A stretch of 64,000 bases of DNA from Octopus sinensis (taxonomy: Eukaryota), in assembly GCF_006345805.1 (NCBI RefSeq), contig NC_043026.1, positions 10,106,001-10,170,000 of the forward strand, read 5' to 3'. Below the pieces are notes generated by a model that worked only from the letters and a program-made list of their open reading frames with translations, ran no database searches and was not told where the DNA came from. The position numbers and the translations under genes are program-made. The first letter of the stretch is position 1. Each line of letters begins with the position of its first letter. Positions 29,888-64,000 of this stretch are shown one piece after another.

Positions 29888-30018
29888 GGAAATGTTTCGT
29901 GTGTCTGGCAGTTGAGAAATTCTTTGCAAATCTTATAAATGTCTTCAAAGCTGATTAGGAGACATTCATGCTGAGGAGGTCTCAACAGGAAGTAGGATGT
30001 ACGACCAATGCGCATGCG
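29888..30018 (-). promoter_or_regulatory. putative promoter motif and non-coding exon 1 of Z2
   Basis: CCAAT adjacent to TGCGCATGCG (30009-30018). Minus-strand GAAACATTTCC|GTAAGTA donor at 29887, homologous to the other ZNF loci. Confidence 0.7.
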
Positions 30019-30859
30019 TGTCTCCTCTTTCTAAATCTTTAGAGCAGATAACTCTAGTCTTACTTTCGTTTTTCGATTTGGTTTGCAAGATTCTTTATAG
30101 CAATTCGTGTGTTGAAGCATATTCTGTTGTGTCTGGGGAGAGTCATTCTCTTTTTGTGCCTTATTATTTAACACACTCACTGGTAAAACTTCCGTTGTCT
30201 CTGTTTTTAGACGCAGCAAATGATTTCAGCTCAAAAGAGAGCATAGAATTGGTTAAAATTCGAAAAATTAAACTACGTTAAACAAACGAATTACAAATTT
30301 ATCAAAAAAGCCAAGTGAAAATAATGTTTTCTTTTGACACATTCTACCAGTATACGACGTTTTAAAGTGTTTAGATGACTAGAAATTGTGTTGAAATCTG
30401 GCTTTCAAAAGGAAAAGATCCAAATTTCCACTTCTTTTGGATATTTTCACTTTGAACGGCAGTTTTTTCTCGTGGTGTCATATGAAATGGTGAAATTGTC
30501 ACCCATGATTATGACCCTAGTATCGATCTATTGCATTTCAATCTGTTTTAGGGTTAGGGGTGGGGGGAAGGGTATCTTTTTTCTTCACAAATGTAAATAA
30601 ACCCAATCTGTTTCTTAAACGAAGGACATATATTCATACGGCACAATGTTTTTTACCTCAATAGACGTCAGTGATTGGTTGGAATTGCAGAGATTGAAGA
30701 AAAAAAAAACAAATATCTTACAAACTATAGAATTTTCTCAATAAAGCCGAGAGAAAAAGATGTTTTATAAACACATTCTATCAGTATACGAAGTTTAAAA
30801 CTTTTTAGTTACCTAGAAATTATGTTAAAAAATGCCGTTCAAACCGAAAAGATCCCTTT

Positions 30860-30992
30860 TTTTTTCTTATTTTTATTGTCCTAAAATTTTCGTTGCGTCT
30901 TGCAACCTTTTCAATAGTTTTGACTCTCAAAACCATTCAAAAAGGTTGCAAAGACGCAACGAAAATTTTAGAACAATAAAAATAAGAAAAAA
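30860..30992. repeat. near-perfect hairpin (~65-bp arms, 3-nt loop)
   Basis: tttttcttatttttattgtcctaaaattttcgttgcgtcttgcaacctttt...ttttga-ctc-tcaaaa...aaaaggttgcaaagacgcaacgaaaattttagaacaataaaaataagaaaaa. Confidence 0.9.
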
Positions 30993-31079
30993 GTGGAAAT
31001 TTTACCGGTGAGTGTTAAATTATAAGGCACAAAAAGAAAATGACTCTCCCCAGACACAACAGAACTCTAGTTTTAATTT

Positions 31080-31691
31080 ATTGAGAATAATGATCCCGGT
31101 GCATGCACTCGCGCAAGCTAGTTATGACTAGCTTTGTTTTTGTGTTACTTTTACTTGTTTGTCATTTGACTGCAGCCATGCTGGAGCACCGCCTTTATTC
31201 GAGCAACTCGACCCCGGGACTTAATCTTTGTAAGCCCAGTACTTATTCTATCGGTCTCTTTTCGCCAAACTGCTAAGTGACGGCAACGTAAACACACCAG
31301 CATCGGTTGTCAAGCAATTCTAGGGGGACAAACACAGACACACAAACATACACGCACACACACATATATATATATATATATATATACATACATATATACG
31401 ATGGGCTTCTTTCAGTTTCCGTCAACCAAATTCACTCATAAGGCTTTGGTCGGCCTGAAGCTATAGTAGAAGACACTTGCCCAAGATGCCACGCAGCGGG
31501 ACTGAACCCAGAACCATGTGATTGGTAATCAAGCTACTTACCACACAGCTACTCCTGTGCCTTTGTTTTAAAAAAATTATTTATTTTGTGTTTTATTTAC
31601 TTTGCTAGGTAGTCATAGGATCAACTAGTCATGACTAGCTAGCGCGGATGTGCGACTACGCGCAACGGGACCACTGTTCTCAAGTAGTACC
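31080..31691. mobile_element. second copy of the 29317 MITE family, interrupted by a SINE
   Basis: Shares ttatttactttgctaggtagtc...gactagctagc.cggatg and ends cgggaccactgttctcaagtagtacc, the exact reverse complement of 29317-29342. Confidence 0.78.
31148..31560 (-). mobile_element. full-length SINE family B nested in the MITE
   Basis: Reverse complement of 21937-22333, including the head. Confidence 0.9.
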
Positions 31692-31972
31692 GTGTTTGTG
31701 TTTGCGTGAATATTCATAACTGAACATATTGACCATCCTATTGGATGTTGTTATATGTCGCTGCTCCGGACGTGGGCTGGTGAATTACTTCGCCGCCCAT
31801 CTTTCCAGCAAGATCCGTCTGGAGAGGAGGAGCCTGCCGCAAAGAGAGTTTGGAAAAAGATGGATGACAGTGGTAAGATAGATGAGACTGCACGAGGCCG
31901 TGCTTGCATGGTCGGTCGGGGCATAAAAGAAAGGAAAAGATTACCAAAAGGGTTAATCGACCGGCGGGTTAA

Positions 31973-32279
31973 CCCCTTACCCGGCAGAAACGAATATATT
32001 CGTTTTGACCGAAATCGTTTTTTCCTATCTCTGGCGAGTTAACTCGTCAAAAGATAGACTTGCCAAAATCAACAGCAAACGAGTTCCTTCGTCTAAAAAC
32101 GGGTTAACTCGTTTCTGCCCAAAGCGGTAATTTAAAATCAATATTATTGAATTAAAATTCATAAATTAATAAGGTTTGAAATATACCTCGAAATCACCAT
32201 TCAAAACACAGTAAAATAAAACAATTAAAAAATGTCTGAAAAAATACATTTATTTTCAAAATAATTGTTGGGTAAGGGG
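31973..32279. mobile_element. non-autonomous piggyBac-type MITE (307 bp)
   Basis: TTAA|CCCCTTACCC ... GGGTAAGGGG|TTAA: TTAA target duplication and CCC-starting TIRs. Confidence 0.85.
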
Positions 32280-61956: not shown

Positions 61957-62463
61957 CTAGCAGTATCGCCCGGCGTTGCTCGGGTTTGTAAGGGAAATAA
62001 CTGTATAAGCATTTTTAGAGAGTTACTTCCCTTATAAATTCGGGCTTTCTTAGCCATTTTTGTTTTGGTGTCTTCAAGCCATGAAGTCGTTGTTCTAAAA
62101 GAACGCTGGTTTCCTTCACAACGCATTACGACGTTGATTTCTTTACACTCCCTTCCCCCACAGCTTCACGAGGGAGGGAAGGGGGAGAAGCAAACAGGTG
62201 CAGCTGTGAGCGTGGACGCCAACTCCGCCGCCATCGACACACGATGCATTTTATGCATTAAAATGGAATAAAAAATGATGTTAAATTATTTTTAAAATCG
62301 TAGACTCATCGTTGACGCGCGCTAATAGTCAGACGGGCTTGATATGAATCACGACTATAAGATACCCGAATTTGGTTAAACTGCACCGCAAAATGTGGGA
62401 GGAGTTAGGAATCTAAATCGAAGGGGACAGACACTCACACAACTAGAGTTTTATATATATAGA
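61957..62463 (-). mobile_element. duplicate of the 507-bp Helitron
   Basis: Same termini and flanks as 55587-56093. Confidence 0.95.
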
Positions 62464-62736
62464 TGTATTTTATTCAAACATGAACAGGATATTTCTACAA
62501 AAACAGAAAGAGAGGGAAAAACATGTCTAGGTAATACCTTATTTTCATAGAATGATTTAAGGCAGATACCACGGATGAGTTAAAATATTTGGGCCAAGCT
62601 GGCAATGAATGGACCAATCAAGAGAGAAATAGAAAGGGCATTGTGAGTAGCGACGTATAACAACATCCGAGACGATGATCAATACAGCCAGGTATAAATA
62701 CTCACACAAACACAGAAAGACCTCCTAACAGCAGGT

Positions 62737-63121
62737 GGCGAACTGGCAGAATCGTTAGCACGGCCGGCGAAATGCTTAGCGGTATTTCGTCTGTCGAGGT
62801 CGACTTTGCCTTTCATCCTTTCGGGGTCGATTAAATAAGTACCAGTGTACCACTGGGGTCGATATAATCGACTTAATCCGTTTGTCTGTCCTTGTTTGTC
62901 TTCTCTGTGTTTAGCCCCTTGTGGGTAGTAAAGAAATAGGTATTTCGTCTGTCGTTACGTTCTGAGTTCAAATTCCGCCGAGGTCGACTTTGCCTTTCAT
63001 CCTTTCGGGGTCGATAAATTAAGTACCAGTTACGCACTGAGGTCGAAGCAATCGACTTAATACCTATGTCTGTCTTTGTTTGTCCCCTCTGTGTTTAGCC
63101 CCTTGTGGATAATAAAGAAAT
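62737..63121 (+). mobile_element. duplicate of the dimeric SINE family C insertion
   Basis: Same sequence and flanks as 56367-56751. Confidence 0.92.
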
Positions 63122-63189
63122 AGGTATACTGTTGATTAAAGGGAGGTAAAGCAGAGCAGGTGCCCTCAGTATTTTGGTGAAAGGGTTAG

Positions 63190-63357
63190 GCATGCGCATT
63201 GAGCGTACTTCTTACTTCATGTTCATATCTGGTTTGAATGTCCTGGGCTTTGATTTCTCTTAATCAACTGATTAATACGCTAATAATACTTATAATTCAT
63301 TTTCCAACTACCAGATAGATATATATATAACAATTCTATCCTTTGTGAAACATTTCC
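63190..63357 (+). promoter_or_regulatory. putative promoter motif and non-coding exon 1 of an eighth ZNF gene (coding exon expected beyond the window)
   Basis: GCATGCGCA at 63190-63198, donor at 63358; the intron matches 56988 onward up to the window end. Confidence 0.72.
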
Positions 63358-64000
63358 GTAAGTATTAAACAAGGAAAATATTCGTTGTTTTTGATTCTGT
63401 AGACTTTCGGTTTTTCGCGCGTCGATTCTTTGAGTCTGATTTGTGCGGGATTTGGCTGCTATTTCTAGCGGAGAAAGCTATCTCGTACAATCTCCTTCGT
63501 TGCCAGGTCAGTTTGTAGTGTTTTAGTTTGAGAAATAGTCTGGAATACACTCCAACCACTGAAATGGTCAGAAAGCGGCATAACTACAGATGTGTACCCC
63601 ATTGACTTTGTTGGCGGATAACTTTGAGAAAAAGGGATACTTTTAAACGAAATTTTCAAAATATATCGCTTAAATGCTGTATATTCAGAATATGTAGGGA
63701 TTTATGGGAACGAATTTTCCCCCCTAATAACTTTCAGAAAAACGGGAATCTTTTAATGAAAGTTTATACCTTCGGAACGGCATGGATTACGATTATATGA
63801 AGAACTTTCTGGGGAAATTGTTTTCCAAGCGATGGGGACAAGAGTATCTGATCAAGAAAAACACATGTTGGGATTTCCTAGATCATATGAGCTTCATTTA
63901 TTTCAAGCTAATGCATGTCCTTGGCAGTCACCGCCCATGTTTCTCTGCCATGTAGCATAGCTGTTCGCACACACGTGTCATACACTCTACCTTTCACTCT

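Follow-up and report, generated by a model that had tools for sequence, protein, structure and literature searches.

How do the members of a tandem zinc-finger gene cluster in octopus come by their promoters and first exons? The question is raised by a 64,000-nucleotide (nt) stretch of Octopus sinensis DNA (NCBI RefSeq assembly GCF_006345805.1, contig NC_043026.1, positions 10,106,001 to 10,170,000 of the forward strand; the window, with coordinates counted from its first letter), in which C2H2 zinc-finger (ZNF) genes are preceded by copies of one short block. The block, or cassette, combines an NRF1-like motif, GCATGCGCA, with a strong 5' splice site (donor), and its seven copies are called c1 to c7 here; an eighth ZNF gene is called a0. 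Judging by its genes, the window covers a portion of a tandem array of octopus C2H2 ZNF genes that is specific to this lineage, and we consider that the repeated block is probably the core promoter and short non-coding first exon of one two-exon ZNF gene each.

The regularity of the arrangement is far beyond chance. Exact matches to GCATGCGCA number seven in the window (shuffle mean 0.20, with no shuffle reaching seven), and the 18-mer GAAACATTTCCGTAAGTA, which is GAAACATTTCC followed by the donor GTAAGTA, also occurs seven times with no mismatch against an expectation of 0.01 (positions of both in Table 1). The motif lies upstream of the donor in all copies, at a distance of 130-168 nt, and block and donor stand on the gene strand, 0.6-2.7 kb upstream of an acceptor that is followed by a leader of 320-347 nt and then a C2H2 finger open reading frame (ORF). 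ATTTCAG, the acceptor, is found at the expected place once per complete intron (n = 6), and these introns measure 590-2717 nt. A profile (nhmmer) built from the copies recovers exactly seven exon-1 blocks and seven acceptor-leader blocks in the window; the seventh of the latter belongs to a0, and the seventh exon-1 block is c7, whose gene lies past the window end. The exon-1 block is found solely upstream of ZNF exons and nowhere dispersed, and an Rfam scan of the window returned no known RNA family. Much of this had been proposed in an initial annotation and is borne out: seven motif copies (one of them placed at 40236, off by one from 40237), a donor 18-mer at seven coordinates that prove exact, a gap of 120-170 nt between the two, and introns of 0.6-2.7 kb that end in ATTTCAG. 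The strand-consistent order that it described, from block to donor, intron, and shared acceptor and non-coding leader before the finger ORFs, is likewise supported.

Seven copies are not, however, seven independent witnesses. Copies c5, c6, and c7 are 6.37-kb tandem repeats (50383 to 56752 to 63122) that are 98.8-99.6% identical, and c4 matches c5 at 94.5% identity over 637 bp, upstream flank included. Effectively there appear to be about four independent old lineages (c1, c2, c3, and c4-7), not seven. The donor that had been called invariant does hold in seven of seven copies without a mismatch, although this count is inflated by the very recent duplicates c5-c7 (~99% identical). When one old lineage is set against another, identity in the exon-1 block is no more than 62-75%, and it is this divergence that makes the comparison informative. 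In an alignment of the block from c1, c2, c3, c4, and c5, 33% of 281 columns are invariant, and they are clustered: the longest invariant run, 18 nt, falls at the donor and was reached in 0 of 5000 column shuffles, and there are three invariant runs of at least 6 nt (GCATGC, TAATCA, and the donor; P = 0.001). The exonic 11 nt of the donor run extend well beyond the needs of a 5' splice site. Farther than ~70 bp upstream of the motif, and inside the introns, identity drops to random level (40-55%), and it is 88-99% among all lineages in the final 110 nt of the intron.

This pattern bears on one alternative, that the block has no function and is neutral DNA hitch-hiking with duplications and gene conversion, or a transposable element (TE) fragment, with "motifs" that merely reflect shared ancestry. 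Such an explanation gains from the three ~99% identical recent repeats among the seven copies and the closeness of c4 to them, from gene conversion that is clearly active in the cluster, and from the disruption of three downstream gene bodies. Yet the old lineages keep strongly clustered invariant sites in a block that has otherwise diverged, flanking DNA of the same age has no remaining homology, the block is never dispersed away from ZNF exons, and a distant O. sinensis paralog retains it with an intact donor. We therefore regard a functionless block as highly improbable.

The splice signals point in the same direction. The upstream block ends, on the gene strand, in the donor TCC/GTAAGTAT (a slash marks the junction), whose intronic part fits the U1-complementary consensus almost perfectly. 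Ahead of the coding exon, the conserved acceptor CTTACACTGTTGTTTCTATCTGATTTCAG/ holds a branch site, a polypyrimidine tract, and the AG. The CAG/ acceptor and the pyrimidine tract are retained in 10 of 10 copies compared, with ATTGCAG and TTTTCAG as variants, and in cross-lineage comparisons the last 110 nt of the acceptor region are more conserved than the exon that follows. Splice dinucleotides kept through surrounding substitutions in this way look like those of a used splice site. An alternative acceptor, CTACAG/, 85 nt upstream, was rejected, as it is lost in the O. sinensis copies. Beyond the window, an O. sinensis locus (L003, CM016879.1:4497505-4520294) has an exon-1-like block, detected by a model built from the window only (nhmmer E = 1e-6). 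It is followed after 2.1 kb by an acceptor-leader block and a ZNF ORF of 272 aa, and its donor, AAAACATTTCT/GTAAGTATTAAAG, keeps GTAAGTA intact. Because a homologous block with an intact donor exists there and because none of the ten copies has lost the CAG acceptor, promoter plus first exon is in our view the best reading. In each copy the leader is closed by stops in all three frames, and exon 1 is thus non-coding for the main ORF.

On this account, transcription would start somewhere in a conserved block of ~240 bp that begins ~70 bp upstream of the NRF1-like half-palindrome, and the first exon would end at the unusually strong 5' splice site TCC/GTAAGTAT. Splicing would then cross a TE-laden intron of 0.6-2.7 kb to CTTACACTGTTGTTTCTATCTGATTTCAG/, and exon 2 would consist of a ~330-nt leader with upstream ATGs (uATGs), the start codon, ~22 non-finger residues, and the whole finger array. 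We infer transcription of the block, splicing at these junctions, a transcription start site (TSS) within the block, and binding of the motif by an NRF1/Ewg orthologue. The predicted mature junction would join GAAACATTTCC to GACATCAGATG in c3, c5, and c6, to GCCATCAGATG in c4, and to AACACATTAATG in c1 and c2. As k-mers, these junctions would read GTGAAACATTTCC+GACATCAGATGAC (c3, c5, c6), TTTCC+GCCATCAGATGAC (c4), and TTTCC+AACACATTAATG (c1, c2), with TTTCCGTAAGTA as the unspliced counterpart. If transcript data confirm it, this would correct the gene models of an octopus ZNF subfamily, which automatic annotation treats poorly, to two exons, and would name GCATGCGCA, TAATCA, and GAAACATTTCC as candidate cis-elements for the regulation of clustered cephalopod ZNFs.

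Several observations weigh against a promoter and first exon in the block. Each leader contains 4-7 uATGs, a number unusual for an efficiently translated mRNA, so that a further intron, or a TSS within the leader block, is conceivable. The leader is nonetheless the best-conserved part of each gene within subgroups (96-100%). No exon-1 cassette was found in the 8 kb upstream of a0 by two hidden Markov models (HMMs) and a donor-plus-motif regular expression, and with the same tools exon 1 was not recognisable in four of the five further acceptor-leader copies that were found in O. sinensis and O. vulgaris. Transcript searches were also negative: exact-protein look-ups of c3, c5, a0, and an 1818-aa ORF of the window gave no record in the assembly collection, Logan protein searches recovered no transcripts of this ZNF family, and the predicted junction 24-mer had 0 matches in metagenome contigs. 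Lastly, three gene bodies (c1, c2, and c4) are disrupted, each behind a perfect cassette. Their lesions may be recent, and they temper any claim that conservation of the cassette reflects current function in each copy.

Part of this evidence would suit genes that are effectively single-exon, with a promoter in or just upstream of the acceptor-leader block, where the cassette would be a co-duplicated regulatory module, an alternative or minor promoter, or a relic, and its donor would be little used. The acceptor-leader block is indeed the most conserved part of these genes (96-100% among c3, c4, and c5 and 99% between c1 and c2) and is recognisable in the five further copies, while intact a0 and four of those five have no detectable cassette; a spliced leader would, moreover, carry the 4-7 uATGs. 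On the other hand, that block opens with a textbook branch site, a pyrimidine tract, and a CAG/ that have survived substitutions in all ten copies, the strong donor is perfectly conserved on the correct strand in every copy and kept in O. sinensis, and an invariant run of 18 nt is not expected of a mere enhancer. We consider single-exon genes unlikely for these reasons, and continue with the two-exon model.

The remaining points on the negative side concern the motif and its assignment to NRF1/Ewg, which the initial annotation had stated outright. The NRF1 decamer GCGCATGCGC has no exact copy in any cassette (9/10 in c1-c3, 8/10 in c4-c7), the full palindrome of two half-sites, YGCGCAYGCGCR, is absent from all seven copies, and the motif is degenerate, ACGCATGTTCA, in the O. 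sinensis L003 copy. "NRF1-like" is nevertheless a fair description. The copies match GCGCATGCGCA at 10/11 positions in c1-c3 and 9/11 in c4-c7, and each has one perfect TGCGCA half-site beside a GCATGC centre, CpGs included, as is usual for functional NRF1 sites at promoters that have no TATA box. At two or fewer mismatches, GCGCATGCGCA gives 20 strand-matches in the window against 4.05 expected, 14 of which are two-strand readings of the seven cassette sites. In c2 the retained half-site is the opposite one (gene strand GCGCATGCTCA), which is why the 9-mer GCATGCGCA lies on the other strand there, and the invariant core across copies is reduced to GCATGC plus CA. We find the NRF1/Ewg assignment plausible.

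It is nonetheless a distinct possibility, though one that we lean against, that the block is a promoter and exon as proposed but GCATGCGCA is not an NRF1/Ewg site, being instead bound by another factor or acting as an RNA element, with the strongest constraint on GAAACATTTCC, the near-palindrome that closes the exon. An RNA role would fit GCAUG, the core recognised by RBFOX. The full palindrome is missing from all copies, their invariant core is short, the half-site retained in c2 is the opposite one, and O. sinensis has ACGCATGTTCA instead; a 5' splice site does not demand the invariance seen in the 11 exonic nt that precede the donor, and both the window and O. sinensis have a similar GAAAYATTTC(C) ~130 nt inside exon 2. 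Against this stand at least one perfect TGCGCA half-site beside the GCATGC centre in each copy and an overall match of 9-10 of 11 positions that includes the CpGs. As for the exon-2 element, exon 1 ends in the 13 nt TGTGAAACATTTC, which form a near-palindrome of the type GAAAnnTTTC and recur ~130 nt into the exon-2 leader, with sites at 52611-52623, 59036-59048, 42355-42370, and 46923-46938 and at ~16400 in L003, where the leader carries GAAATATTTCC at the matching place. A retrocopy with a processed exon 1-exon 2 junction was entertained for this recurrence and rejected, as the match does not extend and scores 26 against shuffles of 19±2.3 (maximum 29); in c3-c6 the leader match to TGTGAAACATTTC is partly produced by a 34-nt deletion.

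Among other promoter elements, CCAAT is not positionally conserved. It had been reported in most copies; near the motif, CCAAT/ATTGG is found solely in c1 (adjacent) and c3 (58 nt upstream), and c2 and c4-c7 have none from -250 to +100 of the donor. Only c4-c7 possess a TATA-like run, which is centred on no motif but placed at -38 from the donor, and the cassettes show no distinct CpG island (CpG observed/expected 0.56-1.36 vs 0.62 for the window). A stronger claim than ours would be that the cassette, with its NRF1-like site, TAATCA, and GAAACATTTCC/GTAAGTA, is a dedicated control module for the whole cluster, in which one factor activates the entire subfamily and the uORF-rich, homogenised leader with its related GAAAYATTTC sets translation. 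If true, it would offer a sequence-level handle on co-expression of the cephalopod ZNF expansion in neural and embryonic tissue. We think it rather doubtful. Tandem ZNF paralogs fall into different co-expression modules (PMC12513265), so a single shared regulator is not favoured.

How the cluster grew can be read from its uneven identity. The youngest duplications carried the whole gene: the c5-type 6.37-kb unit starts at 50383, and its breakpoint is just 68 bp upstream of the motif, which makes c6 and c7 natural "minimal promoter" versions of c5. Directly adjoining the promoters of c6 and c7 is a 184-bp element, present 1.8 times in tandem (56425-56757 and 62795-63127, + strand). In older pairs the two halves of the gene have different histories, through gene conversion or partial duplication, since exon 1 is much less identical than the acceptor-leader-start block. 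Between c1 and c2, exon 1 is 67% identical and the acceptor-leader-start block 98-100%, within a high-identity tract from -340 to +650 of the exon-2 start; between c3 and c4 or c5, exon 1 is 67-71% identical and the block 94-100%, within a tract from -120 to +460. The finger arrays are 68-91% identical. The c1/c2 tract of ~1 kb (26520-27510 and 35260-36250, - strand), 98-100% identical, covers the last 340 intron nt, the leader, and the first fingers. It includes the common finger-1 frameshift, and it looks like gene conversion that copied a disabling lesion between neighbours. Expansion as a complete self-contained unit, as the initial annotation had it, thus describes c5 to c6 to c7 and roughly c4/c5, but not c1/c2 or c3 versus c4/c5. 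Its companion claim that only the finger array diversifies needs a similar correction: the arrays do vary most at helix positions -1, +2, +3, and +6, but exon 1 itself diverges to 62-75% identity.

The family has thus grown by tandem segmental duplication, with a youngest unit of 6.37 kb, followed by TE insertion and intron turnover, and gene conversion or partial duplication has homogenised the acceptor-leader-start block independently of exon 1. Such a mosaic indicates that gene conversion, not whole-gene duplication alone, shapes these clusters and can pass a frameshift from one neighbour to the next. The introns are not wholly unrelated in content, as had been supposed: those of c3 and c5 have two common segments at 78-90% identity, and an intron element ~90 nt past the donor recurs in c1 and c3-c7. 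That element includes GATTTGGCTGCTATTTCTAGC, found once ~90 nt past the donor in the introns of c4-c7 and twice, in degenerate form, in c1. In the c3 intron (40449-41211, + strand) a 102-bp unit that includes GATTTGGCTGCTATTTCTAGC is repeated 7.5 times at 97% identity; since GATTTGGCTGCTATTTCTAGC is single-copy in c4-c7 and repeated in c3, a conserved intron-proximal element has been amplified into a minisatellite in one paralog. Two cassettes depart from the rest: c1 is without a 26-nt segment directly upstream of the donor block, and in c2 a (TA)n/(TG)n microsatellite takes the place of the upstream homology.

The ORFs that follow the blocks encode 11-21 canonical C2H2 fingers each, in tandem and with TGEKP linkers (Pfam zf-C2H2 E = 2e-97, zf-H2C2_2 E = 4e-138), preceded by ~22 non-finger residues and a start codon in the context AARAATGG. 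Pfam on the 500-aa c3 protein found no KRAB (PF01352), SCAN, or other N-terminal effector domain; its matches were of zinc-finger type, apart from short overlaps below threshold, and every one fell on the finger array. Measured over 93 fingers, positions -1, +2, +3, and +6 have entropies of 3.1, 2.4, 3.3, and 3.1 bits, and most framework positions no more than 1.2 bits; this variation at DNA-contact positions is the standard pattern for such families. At c5 (52815-52823) and c6 (59240-59248) the start ATG GAA AAG has become GTG GAA ATG, with a replacement in-frame ATG two codons downstream (52821 in c5); because the lost ATG is replaced by a new in-frame one, coding capacity is suggested to matter in these two copies. 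Coordinates of all cassettes, acceptor-leader regions, and finger arrays are collected in Table 1.

Table 1. Cassettes (promoter-proximal block plus putative non-coding exon 1), acceptor-leader regions, and finger arrays in the window; "9-mer" is the position of GCATGCGCA, "donor G" the first intron base.
Feature	Coordinates	Strand	nhmmer E	Details
c1 cassette	29841..30084	-	1e-61	motif ACGCATGCGCA 30009-30019; 9-mer 30009(-); last exon base 29888; donor GT 29887-29886
c2 cassette	37435..37677	-	5e-66	motif, gene strand, GCGCATGCTCA 37640-37650; 9-mer 37643; donor G 37481
c3 cassette	40170..40435	+	6e-74	motif ACGCATGCGCA 40235-40245; 9-mer 40237; donor G 40390
c4 cassette	45986..46254	+	8.5e-82	motif AGGCATGCGCA 46050-46060; 9-mer 46052; donor G 46208
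c5 cassette	50385..50665	+	5e-86	motif AGGCATGCGCA 50449-50459; 9-mer 50451; donor G 50619
c6 cassette	56754..57034	+		~99% identical to c5; motif 56818-56828; 9-mer 56820; donor G 56988
c7 cassette	63124..63404	+		~99% identical to c5, c6; motif 63188-63198; 9-mer 63190; donor G 63358
c1 acceptor region + leader	26823..27279	-		ATTTCAG 27177-27171; exon 2 from 27170; 347-nt leader to canonical ATG 26823
c2 acceptor + leader	35561..36017	-		ATTTCAG 35915-35909; exon 2 from 35908; 347-nt leader to ATG 35561
c3 acceptor + leader	42126..42558	+		ATTTCAG 42229-42235; exon 2 from 42236; 323-nt leader
c4 acceptor + leader	46690..47126	+		ATTTCAG 46791-46797; exon 2 from 46798; 329-nt leader
c5 acceptor + leader	52377..52814	+		ATTTCAG 52479-52485; exon 2 from 52486; 329-nt leader
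c6 acceptor + leader	58802..59239	+		ATTTCAG 58904-58910; exon 2 from 58911; 329-nt leader
c1 finger array	25322..26823	-		16 fingers; disrupted: TAA at canonical codon 9, frameshift in common with c2, premature stop 25587 with three finger units beyond
c2 finger array	33644..35561	-		21 fingers; disrupted: finger-1 frameshift ends canonical ORF after 36 codons; 616-aa ORF from internal out-of-frame ATG 35494
c3 coding exon	42559..44061	+		intact, 500 aa, 17 C2H2 fingers; AATAAA 63 nt past stop
c4 finger array	47127..48539	+		15 fingers, one frame; disrupted: in-frame stop after codon 284
c5 coding exon	52815..54059	+		intact, 14 fingers
c6 coding exon	59240..60484	+		intact, 14 fingers; protein identical to c5
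a0, eighth ZNF	15699..17214	-		acceptor ATTTCAG 17105-17099; 320-nt leader; intact ORF 15699-16778, ~360 aa, 11 fingers

The surroundings of these genes are rich in repeats. The DNA upstream of a0 (17215-25330) is filled with them, among them one with a period of 166 bp at ~19917-20853 and, at 20.9-23.9 kb, inverted repeats that are GC-rich and bear ORFs. The interspersed repeats of the window have counterparts at 93-100% identity in loci of O. sinensis and O. vulgaris. At 3469-8925 (+ strand) there is an uninterrupted ORF of 1818 aa that has no significant Pfam domain (DUF4934 at E = 0.003 is below the cut-off) and no sequence relative in PDB. The sole database relative of the ZNF N-terminus is an O. 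bimaculoides ZNF (P0121), for which the assembly collection gave no record. Protein searches otherwise returned predominantly vertebrate ZNFs, or one match, or short unrelated finger proteins, and one match (P0010) was rejected as an unrelated conserved ZNF; a genomic 17-mer had 108 metagenome matches, none of them a real homolog by nhmmer. Within L003 (10001-12790 of the CM016879.1 locus), the public annotation gives a 109-aa spliced product where an uninterrupted multi-finger ORF of 401 aa runs from the same ATG, and family members appear to be mis-modelled by automatic annotation.

Lineage-specific expansions of C2H2 genes in octopus are published (Albertin et al. 2015, as cited in PMC10547256), and the genes of the window resemble them in their tandem poly-finger clusters, HTGEKPY linkers, recent duplicates, and TE-rich setting, as well as in a best N-terminal match to an O. 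bimaculoides ZNF and homologous leader blocks in O. sinensis and O. vulgaris. The promoter, first exon, and leader of octopus C2H2 genes are not described in PMC10547256 or PMC12513265, nor were they found in the literature searched; the words "exon", "promoter", "UTR", "intron", and "motif" do not occur in the text of PMC12513265. As to the motif, the octopus sites resemble NRF1/Ewg/P3A2 sites of TATA-less promoters: TGCGCA half-sites make up an element that is GC-rich and palindrome-like, and the first donor follows it at a short, fixed distance. They lack the full YGCGCAYGCGCR in all copies. No description of NRF1 motifs in cephalopods was found in the literature searched. A parallel for a common promoter is found in the FiNZ-ZNF genes of zebrafish chromosome 4, which, as summarised in PMC10547256 (Hadzhiev et al. 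2019/2023), comprise hundreds of clustered paralogs with a stereotyped promoter and a first exon that can be aligned across the family. According to the same summary, those "sharp-peak" genes have a TATA box and a coding first exon with the FiNZ domain, whereas the octopus exon 1 would be non-coding and a TATA-like run is found only in c4-c7.

The initial annotation had likened the cluster to vertebrate KRAB-ZNF clusters. The architecture is analogous, but for octopus C2H2 genes both the expansion and the KRAB-ZNF analogy are already published ideas (PMC10547256; Holzinger et al. 2025, PMC12513265). As in KRAB-ZNF clusters such as those of human chromosome 19, we find tandem duplication, putative 5' non-coding exon(s) with one large finger exon, hypervariable DNA-contact residues, and frequent pseudogenes. 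In contrast, the octopus genes have no KRAB, SCAN, or other effector domain, ~22 residues before finger 1, and two predicted exons as opposed to four or five, and the likeness is analogous, not homologous. Beyond its mosaic history, then, the cluster as read here has the ordinary and expected architecture of a tandemly duplicated ZNF gene family, a 5' non-coding exon joined to one large finger exon.

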